From Pelomyxa schiedti (lineage: Eukaryota > Protista > Evosea): DNA of 64,000 nucleotides. Position 1 is the first letter of the stretch. Every line of letters starts with the position of its first letter. The DNA is taken from positions 62,001 through 126,000 of the forward strand of contig JAHLWZ010000806.1 of the NCBI GenBank assembly GCA_020536535.1. Reading direction: 5' to 3'. Positions 59,680 through 62,600 of the stretch are shown here, piece by piece. A model generated the notes under the pieces. The model had not been told where the DNA came from, made no database searches, and was given only the letters and a program-made list of their open reading frames with translations. Position numbers and translations under genes: made by a program.

Positions 59680-62600
59680 ATGGCAGACGTGCGTTTTTTT
59701 TTTCCCCAGTGACACCACTCCCCTGCCACATGTCACAGCTGCGCACGTTAGATTCTTTTGTCATTTTTTAACATTAATTCCAGCACGACGACTCGGCACA
59801 CAAACGCAAAAGGGGACACACAAAGTCAGTGCACAAAGAGGATACGGAAAATGGTGACCCGGATTGCCCCTCCCCTACTACAGAGAAAGCACCAACACCT
59901 TCGTCATCTACTGCCACAAGCACAGCTCCTGCAGCGTCAATGGCGGCAGCAACTACTACCACCACAACATCAACTGCTACCGCTTCGGCGACTACAACTG
60001 CTGCGGCTCCTGTAGAACTTCCTGGCTCCCCCATAGAAAGTAGTGTTCCTGTTTCATTGTGTGACAATGCTGAGGAAGACTGCATTGAAGTGGATGCCCT
60101 GGATTCATCACAGATTGCACTTGTAAGTACCTCTGTCATTCTAAATATAATTCCTGTTCTGCCATCCTCTGGATTTGTCATTAATATTCCACTTTTTCAG
60201 TCCCATATTGTCTCCATGCGAGCTCTCCTTAGATCCAGCAGCAGGGTTCTTCCTGAAGACAGTGCAAGGGCTTCGTTCTCCACTATGCAGGTTCGTACAT
60301 ATAAACTAACAAAAAATATAACACAAACTAGACCATTGGTGGTTTCTTTACTCTGTGCAAAGTTAAAGGATCACTGCTTGCGAATATAAAACTTAGCTAT
60401 GACAAGCATTATCTAATGATCTCCCCTGTTGTAAAAGCGGGAAGTGACTATAAATTCACTGTCATGCCCAACTGTACAGTCTCTGTAAAAATATCCATTA
60501 AATTGACTCTACTGTCTTGAAAGATCCAAAACTGGTACTTCTTGCCCATGTAGTTGAAATCTTGCAAGGACAATTCAATCCCTCGTTCTTGAAATGCGGA
60601 CAAGAAGAAAAAGTGGACTGTTCCTTCAGTCTTATATGCAAAAAGTAACCGCCTTCCTTTTTCTTTTTTTTTTTGGGACTTAACAGTCGCCAGCGGGGAG
60701 ACATTCGATCTCGTTGCGGAAAACAAAGCAGCCAAAATGCAATGGGTCAATTCCCTCGAGAAGTTGATTGACTCTACCCTCACACCGATTCTGCGCTTCA
60801 TTGATAGTGCATGGCGTTCAGAAAGCTTCACCTGGATAAATTTTGAGCAAACATTGCAGTTACTGCAGAAATTGTATGAAACACTCTAACCTCAGACTCA
60901 AGTTGAACCCACTTTCCCTAGGAACTTCAAGCCAGCCAAGAATTCCCTCAAAACTCGTTTCAATGTTATCATTCTCCTTTCCTATGCAATTTCTGAAATT
61001 TGAAACAGGAGGTTGCTGTAGATAAGCCTGGGTTTATCAATTATGCAAATTTTCGGGTCTTGATTATATCCCTTCTTAATAGAAGGGAGATTGCTGAGTG
61101 TTTCAGTAAGCTCACCAATGCTGGGAAAAAGCCACTAGGAGCTGCTGAAATACTGGAATTTCACAAAACCTGCCAGAGTGAGGTTATTCACCTCGTTCTG
61201 ATTTCCTTATGAAGTAATATGGACCACCAGACTGAAGACTTCACACCTGAGGATGCTGCCGTTGTGATACGTCGTTTTGGTGAGAATCGGGATGACCACG
61301 GGGCACCCGTGATGCCTACGCAACTTTTACTTCATGAATTTGAAGCCTACCTTTTATCGAAGCATAATTCTATCTTCCATCCTGCTATGTCCCAAATTCA
61401 TCAGGTGTTGTCAACTCATCCAATTCTCTGGTAACTTACCCTTCATAGGACATGACAGCACCACTGACTTTCTATTATATCAATGGATTTACTTCCTTCG
61501 CCACACCCGAAGGTTACTTCCGCTTCCTGAAGAAGGGAAACGGTCGTTACCTTGAAAGTTCGTTTCCAACCACTATTGTCTTTTATTGATTTCTGTCAGT
61601 TGTAATACTTGATGGAAAGGAGGAATATGTAGATGAAATCCTGAGACTTGTTAAAGAATTTGCCTTCAAAATTAACCCGTAAGCAGAACCATCGTACTTG
61701 CAGTCAATTTATTTTTTCCAACAGGTTCCCTGTTATACTGTATCTCAGAATCAAATGTGGCGAAAAACAGCAAGTTAGTCCATTGTCAGAAATTCATTTT
61801 CTGTTAATTTGGCCTATTGTAGGAAAGACTTGTCTCCTCACTGAAAACCATTCTTGGGGATTCACTTGCAAAACCCCTGTGTGAGGCAAAACCTGATTTG
61901 AAATACCTGCCTTCCCCAGCTGCCCTAAAAAACCGTGTATTATTAATGGTGGATAGTGTATAGCGACCGATGTTTGTATTGATCGTCATTTTTAGGGTAA
62001 ACTGGATGACGTAACTGAAGATCTCGGAAACATGCTCTTCCTTCATGCATGCACGCCAGCCACTTTTCCAGAGGATTTAGGTAGTTCCCTGCTTTCAAGT
62101 TGAATTTTCCCAACATTTGTCGTATAGATGTTGCAAGGCCTTGGGATGTTTTACTCATTGCACAGAAGAATTTTGATAGATTTGAACCCTCGAAGTTGAT
62201 AGAATATCCTTTTTCCCCATTCCATTGCCTCACTATGCGGTCCCTTAACCTCTCACAAACATTCCAGACGATTTATCACGCAAGTTCGGCCATCAAAGAA
62301 ATGGCCTCCACTGGAGCCGTAGGCCTTATGTGTTCACTACTTTTTTTCTGACTTCGACAAAGTTGTTCTGCATGGGCCAGTGGCATACAACTGGCACCTG
62401 TGAGTCCCACTGACTTCACTGCATCTCTGGCCGAAGGCAAATTTATACTGAATGGAGGCTGCGGGTATCAAAGGAAACAGTGGTTTATGACACTGGACCC
62501 AATATCTTTTGAGGATGTTGTAAGCTACCCCAGTGCTGCGGCAATCAACACTGTGAACAGTTTAACCGTTGAGGTTAGTTACTTAATATTTTTTTTTTCT

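Follow-up and report, generated by a model that had tools for sequence, protein, structure and literature searches.

How is a reading frame kept when a U12-type 5' splice site and a U12-type branch site interrupt it, and neither of the AC dinucleotides downstream lies at the right distance? This question is raised by a PLC-like gene of Pelomyxa schiedti. It lies in the window (the whole stretch of DNA analysed, 64,000 nucleotides), in which an earlier note had proposed a minor-spliceosome intron with a non-canonical end. The assembly that we searched has 52,367,397 bases in 5337 contigs, and the published genome is given as 52.4 Mb in 5337 scaffolds (PMC8887013). Considering motifs, frames, homologues and paralogues, we propose that positions 62204..62258 of the plus strand are, with good probability, a 55-nt U12-type intron with AT..AA ends.

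An interrupted reading frame with U12-type motifs

The host gene is an intact PLC-delta-like/PP2C-like gene, and 62204-62258 falls in its Y-domain region. The upstream exon (62128..62203, plus strand) closes with ..DVARPWDVLLIAQKNFDRFEPSKLI and the GA of a Glu codon, so that it ends in phase 2. It aligns to DDARPWDILCLSEKDFTKYDPEKFVE of the homologue P0002 with identical spacing. This exon is open in one frame only (..DVARPWDVLLIAQKNFDRFEPSKLIE). It reads ..FEPSKLIE, and the last codon, GAA, occupies 62202-62204.

Both motifs named in the earlier note are found where it placed them. The 5' splice site ATATCCTTT (62204..62212, plus strand) is a perfect match to the consensus [AG]TATCCTT. The branch-point sequence TCCCTTAAC (62241..62249, plus strand) is near-perfect against TTCCTTRAY, with 62248 as the presumed branch A. 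The spacing between the two motifs is also right. Thus, 62204-62258 has a U12 5' site at its first base and, near its 3' end, a branch-point sequence with no polypyrimidine tract. It does not have a canonical terminal pair (AT-AC or GT-AG), and the only end that matches the family is AA. The octamer RTATCCTT occurs 11 times in the 64-kb window, against 2.9 expected. The match at 62204 alone has a branch motif, and the other 10 are without one. The match at 36361 sits in coding text (..ENPYPLLCVLNTRGE..).

Downstream, the sequence SRRFITQVRP begins at 62263, one frame off the upstream exon. Therefore, the gap length must be 1 mod 3. An intron that starts at 62204 would be 53 nt long with the AC at 62255-56 and 57 nt long with the AC at 62259-60. 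Both lengths leave the frame broken, as the earlier note had stated. Its three frame-restoring junctions also agree with the arithmetic. They are AT..AA at 62204-62258 (55 nt), AT..CA at 62204-62261 (58 nt) and a shifted AT-AC at 62206-62260 (55 nt). This list missed an in-frame AT-AG at 62204-62267 (64 nt), which reads ..LIE-RFITQV... The further statement that no GT-AG solution exists did not hold. A GT at 62195-96 and an AG at 62266-67 give an in-frame GT-AG of 73 nt (62195-62267, ..EPSK-RFITQV..), yet it is a weaker solution, which deletes conserved residues.

The inferred 3' terminal dinucleotide, AA at 62257..62258 on the plus strand, comes from this frame arithmetic and from the homologue alignment. 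It is flanked by the two out-of-frame ACs. The placements 62203-62257, 62204-62258 and 62205-62259 give identical mRNA, because there is an A at 62203, 62204, 62258 and 62259. Among these equivalent placements, the register of the U12 5' splice site would pick 62204.

With this junction, the middle exon (62259..62318, plus strand) starts with the A that completes the GAA of Glu. It continues with HSRRFITQVRPSKKWPPLE and ends with the CC of a Pro codon. An ordinary GT-AG intron follows (GTAGGC..AAAG, 44 nt, phase 2, 62319..62362, plus strand). Its position is common to the paralogue on contig C755 (..KQNP/C.., a slash marking the junction here and below). The next exon (62363..62573, plus strand) contains the end of the PLC Y domain (CSAWASGIQLAP..GKFILNGGCGYQRKQ..) and is 55% identical to P0002. 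The Pfam PI-PLC-Y profile matches this exon weakly (E = 0.033, profile positions 74-111). On the remaining short exon pieces, Pfam did not discriminate between the frames.

The rest of the gene was compared with P0002 by tblastn against C806:121001-130000. Residues 212-1286 align exon by exon, with 35-56% identity per block, and introns are the sole defects. Since there is no other defect, the gene looks functional and needs an in-frame splice. We found no public gene model or transcript-derived protein of the locus in the protein collections.

Conservation of the protein across the junction

The relatives were gathered by an exhaustive HMMER search with the adjacent exon (62364-62573) as query, which returned P0002, P0004, P0006 and others. 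Exons served individually as queries. Two of the relatives, P0002 and P0017, are paralogues from P. schiedti. Two more, P0006 and P0016, are Mastigella eilhardi transcripts assembled with Trinity (EukProt), and are therefore mRNA-derived. A search for a nucleotide record encoding P0002 or P0006 found none. At the junction, all four proteins read VE-H[ST]R... More precisely, P0002 has ..PEKFVE-HSRKFMTQVHATKK.., P0017 has ..VRFVE-HTRKFMTQVHAQKK.. and Mastigella has ..SVVVE-HSRSCLTIVHG... Exactly 19 residues lie between the conserved PW and EH in P0002, P0017 and Mastigella. Once 62204-62258 is taken out, the window reads ..PSKLIE-HSRRFITQVRPSKK.., and the count from PW to EH is again 19 residues. 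E-H-S-R with the family spacing is reproduced only by this 55-nt AT..AA intron. Hence, the junction that the earlier note listed first, AT..AA giving E-H-S, is the one that the homologues support. The protein conservation that favours the AT-AA subclass includes a Mastigella transcript, which is not from the P. schiedti locus.

The frame of the middle exon cannot be chosen by eye, because a likeness to the PLC motif LSRIYP is seen in each of the three (QTIY, HSRRF and LSRKF). We scored the frames against P0002 as plain in-frame translations of genomic DNA, with no joining. Frame 1, the one of AT..AA, scores 53 (z about 10; shuffles 16.6 +/- 3.6). For the two frames that follow from the AC ends, the score is 20 (z about 1), which is background.

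These scores bear on the explanation in which a canonical AC (62259-60 or 62255-56) is used. The frame problem would then be due to an assembly indel near the 3' end, or splicing would be mostly unproductive. An intron that begins with AT prefers to end with AC. In animals, the best distance is 11-13 nt (PMC3584512), and the AC at 62259-60 lies 12 nt from the branch A. In addition, the assembly derives from whole-genome-amplified single cells, sequenced with Illumina and Nanopore (PMC8887013). A DNA search found no second (allelic) contig over the locus that could confirm the A-run 62257-62259. Nevertheless, the middle exon would be read in frames unlike the family, 20 against 53. To return to frame, a second intron of 33 or 31 nt would be needed, and the introns of this gene are about 37-49 nt. 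Both combinations, the AC at 62260 with a 33-nt second intron and the AC at 62256 with a 31-nt one, were rejected, as their frames do not resemble the family. With the AC at 62260, the following exon begins with ATTCC whatever the length of the A-run, so an indel there is no remedy. For the AC at 62256, two bases would have to be deleted or one inserted, and the remainder of the gene is intact. We consider the use of a canonical AC unlikely. The AC at 62260 implies the junction GAATTCC (longer form TTGATAGAATTCCAGA), and the AC at 62256 implies GAAAACATT (longer form TTGATAGAAAACATTCC). The AT-AA junction is GA/ACATTCC, with TTGATAGAACATTCCAGA as the sequence across the gap. Genomic CACAAACATTCC together with a GA/ACATTCC junction is incompatible with an AC end.

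The shifted AT-AC intron (62206-62260, E-Y-S) and the AT..CA intron (62204-61, D-S) are both in frame. The AT-AC ends speak for the shifted version, as does the variation (H, C or I) seen across the family at the residue that follows Glu. However, the shifted cut falls 2 nt inside the consensus. As a 5' site, ATCCTTTT has 4 mismatches to ATATCCTT, and the phase changes from the phase 2 of the family. Likewise, AT..CA leaves one residue fewer than in every homologue and turns Glu into Asp. A junction GAACATTCC is incompatible with either of them, and that one of these two is used seems highly improbable.

The same intron site in four paralogues

An intron at the position and phase of the window's intron, after the GA of a Glu codon, is present in all four paralogues compared (contigs C996, C97, C755 and C897). 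Thus, the intron position is conserved in the homologues. The window reads GA/ATATCCTTT...CTCACAA/A CAT TCC AGA, with 55 nt. C996 has GA/GTATCCTTT...CACCTTGAC, 9 nt and then ...CAG/G CAC TCT AGG, with 59 nt. The other three are GA/GTACGG...CCCAG/G CAT ACA AGA in C97 (46 nt), GA/GTATAT...CACAG/G TGT GCT AGG in C755 (43 nt) and GA/GTGAGT...CTCAG/G ATA AGC CGT in C897 (41 nt).

C996 and C755 encode KAH3743374.1 and KAH3758579.1, both labelled P. schiedti. The C996 intron (G000:C996:18260-18318, minus strand) has GT-AG ends and stands before a His codon. Its 5' site is GTATCCTTT, and CCTTGAC lies 9 nt before its 3' end (AG). Judging by these motifs, it looks U12-type with GT-AG ends, and the introns of C97, C755 and C897 look U2-type. 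The U12 status of the C996 intron rests on context, because the GT-type motif pair is not enriched genome-wide (13 pairs against 17 in the control). It shares position and phase with the window's intron and differs from it in its GT-AG ends and its 59 nt. As GT-AG ends are permitted, the C996 intron is spliced correctly in the public model.

The His, Ser and Arg codons after the junction differ between the window and C996 at synonymous third positions only (CAT/CAC, TCC/TCT and AGA/AGG). This suggests that these nine bases are coding and not intronic. This result bears on a U12-type AT-AG intron at 62204-62267 (64 nt), which would give ..LIE-RFITQV.. without HSR. Such an intron keeps the frame. 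Among non-canonical U12 introns, AT-AG is common in human and mouse (PMC1557818), and in Physarum it is the most frequent type, with 29% (bioRxiv 10.1101/2020.10.12.336362). However, it makes CAT TCC AGA intronic, although these codons encode the H-S-R of the family and are synonymous with those of C996. It also breaks the conserved spacing, and its AG lies 19 nt from the branch A, beyond the inferred range of 8-12 nt. An AT-AG intron is therefore very unlikely here. Its junction would be GAACGATTT, that is, GA/ACGATTT (longer form TTGATAGAACGATTT).

The paralogues also speak to a U2-type GT-AG intron at 62195-62267, inside which the U12 motifs would be unused. It keeps the frame (..EPSK-RFITQV..) with standard dinucleotides, and is the sole kind of solution that standard gene predictors accept. 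The public annotation has only GT-AG, GC-AG and one GT-GG (PMC8887013). On the other hand, it removes LIEHSR, six residues that are aligned and largely conserved across all relatives. It shifts the intron off the position and phase common to the four paralogues. With GTTGAT, it has a poor 5' site, its 73 nt are more than is usual in this host gene, and a perfect U12 5' splice site and a branch site would be left unexplained. We give this intron hardly any credence. It implies the junction AAACGATTT (longer form TCGAAACGATTT), and the presence of TTGATAGA upstream of the junction is incompatible with it.

The minor spliceosome and other U12-like introns

The earlier note had supposed that this organism retains a minor spliceosome, and the assembly supports this. 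Three of the four minor snRNAs that it named exceed the Rfam gathering scores: U12 with 58.2 bits (C475), U11 with 67.5 bits (C820) and U6atac with 62.7 bits (C841). The fourth, U4atac, was not found in the assembly by its Rfam model, and this blank is no proof of absence. The U12 snRNA keeps the canonical branch-binding box GAGTAAGGAAAA, and the branch site TCCCTTAAC can pair with the box GAGTAAGGAA of this RNA. In the U6atac candidate, the box for pairing with the 5' splice site is divergent and lacks the consensus sequence, which counts against the proposed intron. Besides, 90 minor introns have been reported for P. schiedti (Larue & Roy 2023, PMC10639083).

The pattern ATATCCTTN{10,40}CCTTAAC occurs 23 times genome-wide, against 4 for the reversed control (about 6-fold). 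The pairing of U12 5' and branch motifs is more than chance. Since the GT-type pair is not enriched, the minor introns of P. schiedti appear to be mostly AT-type.

We fetched 20 other ATATCCTT..CCTTAAC loci, and their ends were inferred by open-frame arithmetic only. In about 12 of these introns, the AC that keeps the frame is found 8-12 nt past the branch A, with 10 nt as the commonest distance. AC ends at 8 and 12 nt seem usable by the same arithmetic (L007 and L012). At L015, an OTU-domain gene (Pfam 26.2 bits), an AT end at 11 nt is required for the reading ..IIKLS-YHDDNHYASV. It means that at least one other locus needs a non-AC end. L006, L009 and L020 may have AT-AA ends, as open frames without homology support.

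In the window, the inferred AA end is 10 nt from the branch A at 62248. The idea that the 3' end is chosen by the distance to the branch point, advanced in the earlier note, fits this value, which is the modal inferred distance for AT-type introns. The idea itself is established U12 biology and is not new (PMC3584512, PMC1557818). What stands against AT-AA is the presence of two canonical ACs, one 2 nt before and one 2 nt after the AA, at 8 and 12 nt from the branch A. Such ACs seem to be used in frame in other P. schiedti introns. As both distances are apparently usable elsewhere, known U12 behaviour predicts competition from these ACs. Some use of them is possible, and it would give frameshifted, unproductive mRNA.

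Proposed splicing of the intron and its significance

Motifs, frames and snRNA genes are direct observations, and so are the conservation of the intron position and that of the protein text. Conservation suggests that the cell uses the AT-AA junction. U11, and later U6atac, would recognize ATATCCTTT, and the 5' cut would fall before A62204. U12 would pair with TCCCTTAAC, with the branch A bulged at about 62248. The second step would take an A-N dinucleotide about 10 nt downstream, here AA at 62257-58. At this position, we infer that the distance to the branch point overrides the dinucleotide. GA would thus be joined to A-CAT-TCC, and the protein would read ..LIE-HSRRF.., as in the relatives.

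The public annotation of P. schiedti comprises 98.41% GT-AG introns, 1.59% GC-AG and one GT-GG, and zero AT-type introns (PMC8887013). So, the intron 62204-62258 and its class are probably absent from the public gene models. Since the annotation is limited to GT/GC-AG, genes with AT-type minor introns are likely mis-modelled, including this PLC-like/PP2C-like gene. Likewise, the count of minor introns in P. schiedti is likely too low. The 90 reported introns share genome and machinery with the one described here. Their count rests on the AT-free public annotation, so the AT-AA intron is unlikely to be among them.

A broader reading can be stated, which we regard as unlikely. The minor introns of P. 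schiedti would be AT-dominated, with an unusually free last base: the end would be any A-N about 10 nt past the branch A. AA, AT and AG ends would make up perhaps 10-25% of the AT-type introns, against 4-5% in animals and plants. The minor spliceosome that removes them would have a U6atac that has lost its consensus box for 5' splice-site pairing. All AT-type introns would be missing from the annotation, and hence from the count of 90.

What is new is one probable AT-AA intron of a known type, in a species already reported to have minor introns. Its importance is practical more than conceptual, and what is known of 3'-end choice by the minor spliceosome is unchanged by the intron 62204-62258. 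The paralogue family is a small natural series at one intron site, with an apparent AT-AA U12 intron, a GT-AG U12-like intron and three that look U2-type. This series exemplifies, within a single genome, how introns switch subtype and convert from U12 to U2.

Comparison with known systems

Non-canonical introns make up about 4-5% of U12 introns, and introns with AT-AN and GT-AT ends can be spliced (Sheth 2006, PMC1557818). Splicing of AT-AN introns by the minor spliceosome was shown experimentally, according to work cited in PMC1557818. Thus, canonical termini are no defining requirement of the class. AT-AA is the commonest non-canonical type of minor intron in animals and plants (PMC10639083). 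The distance from branch to 3' end is a recognized determinant, with an optimum of 11-13 nt, and the choice of the 3' site by the U12 machinery is described as error-prone (PMC3584512).

The AT-AA U12 introns of animals and plants (human and mouse RASGRP4, human MSH3 and Arabidopsis; PMC1557818, PMC10639083) share the ATATCCTT 5' site with the window's intron. They also share a TCCTTAAC-type branch site near the 3' end and an AA that is one base from an AC. In contrast, the intron of the window belongs to an archamoeba and has only 55 nt. It is flanked by two ACs that would be unused, and its junction is homology-inferred.

An amoebozoan comparison is Physarum polycephalum, where paralogue conservation was also taken as support (Larue, Elias & Roy, bioRxiv 10.1101/2020.10.12.336362). 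In Physarum, 27% of all U12 introns with non-canonical ends are AT-AA, and the distance between branch motif and 3' end is 9-12 nt. However, Physarum has >20,000 U12 introns, its branch motif is altered (TTTGA) and its U12 snRNA has co-evolved. P. schiedti differs in its canonical branch motif and U12 box, and its ATATCCTT..CCTTAAC-type introns are in the tens.

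Paralogues of the host gene

The host gene of the putative AT-AA U12-type intron (window 62204-62258) occupies window 59680-64000 and runs on to about 64700 (contig C806 of the Pelomyxa schiedti assembly, G000, 121680-126700). Its product is PLC-delta-like and intact, with PH, EF, X, Y and C2 domains, plus a PP2C-like C-terminal extension. P. schiedti has five or more paralogues in this family, and the host gene has a homologue in Mastigella. One paralogue, KAH3758579.1, bears the GenBank name 'ABC transporter, ATP-binding protein', which looks like a misnomer.

Five paralogues present different introns at one site. 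It is AT-AA U12 in the host gene and GT-AG U12-like in a second member (C996:18260-18318, minus strand). The other three carry U2-type introns: C97:3158-3203, minus strand (inspected stretch L031), C755:14327-14369 (L035) and C897:3593-3633 (L034). Branch-like remnants persist in two of these three (CACCTTGAAC in C755 and CTCCTTTTGAC in C97). Judged from sequence, the series suggests that introns have switched subtype, and changed from U12 to U2, inside one genome.

Minor introns across the genome

An OTU-domain gene also contains a probable minor intron, ATATCCTTT...CCCTTAAC, on the plus strand of C690 at about 23975-24035 (stretch L015:401-461). It is probably an AT-AT intron, because only the AT 3' end yields the family text ..LS-YH...HY.SV. 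This end lies 11 nt past the branch A.

We counted pairs of 5' splice site and branch-point motifs over the whole assembly, with control patterns (reversed, for the AT type). The AT-type pair ATATCCTT..CCTTAAC is enriched (23 vs 4 in the control), whereas no enrichment is seen for GTATCCTT..CCTTRAC, the GT-type pair (13 vs 17). Thus, on these pattern counts, the minor introns of P. schiedti seem to be mostly AT-type. The published annotation holds zero AT-type introns (PMC8887013). Therefore, the reported count of 90 minor introns (PMC10639083) probably omits this class. One AT-type match is identical, at nearly equal offsets, in C842 (55874-55926) and C862 (55858-55910), which are probably duplicate or allelic contigs.

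The window itself has 11 RTATCCTT sites, against 2.9 expected from shuffles, but only one of the 11, at 62204, is an intron site. The sole further site inspected, at 36361, falls within coding sequence. This excess may reflect codon or dipeptide usage.

Minor spliceosomal snRNAs

No Rfam model match for U4atac, the pairing partner of U6atac, appears in the assembly, a blank that is not proof of absence. For U6atac, the Rfam model gives a candidate of 62.7 bits at C841:53279-53397 (stretch L004:1501-1619). It is the sole one; the pattern GAGAGANGGTTAGCA, with at most one mismatch, finds no further copy. The candidate departs from the Rfam consensus exactly at the box pairing with the U12-type 5' splice site, where the consensus is GAAAGGAGAGAAGGUUAGCA and the P. 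schiedti gene has GAGCCGAGAGAUGGUUAGCA. Despite this altered box, P. schiedti minor introns retain ATATCCTT.
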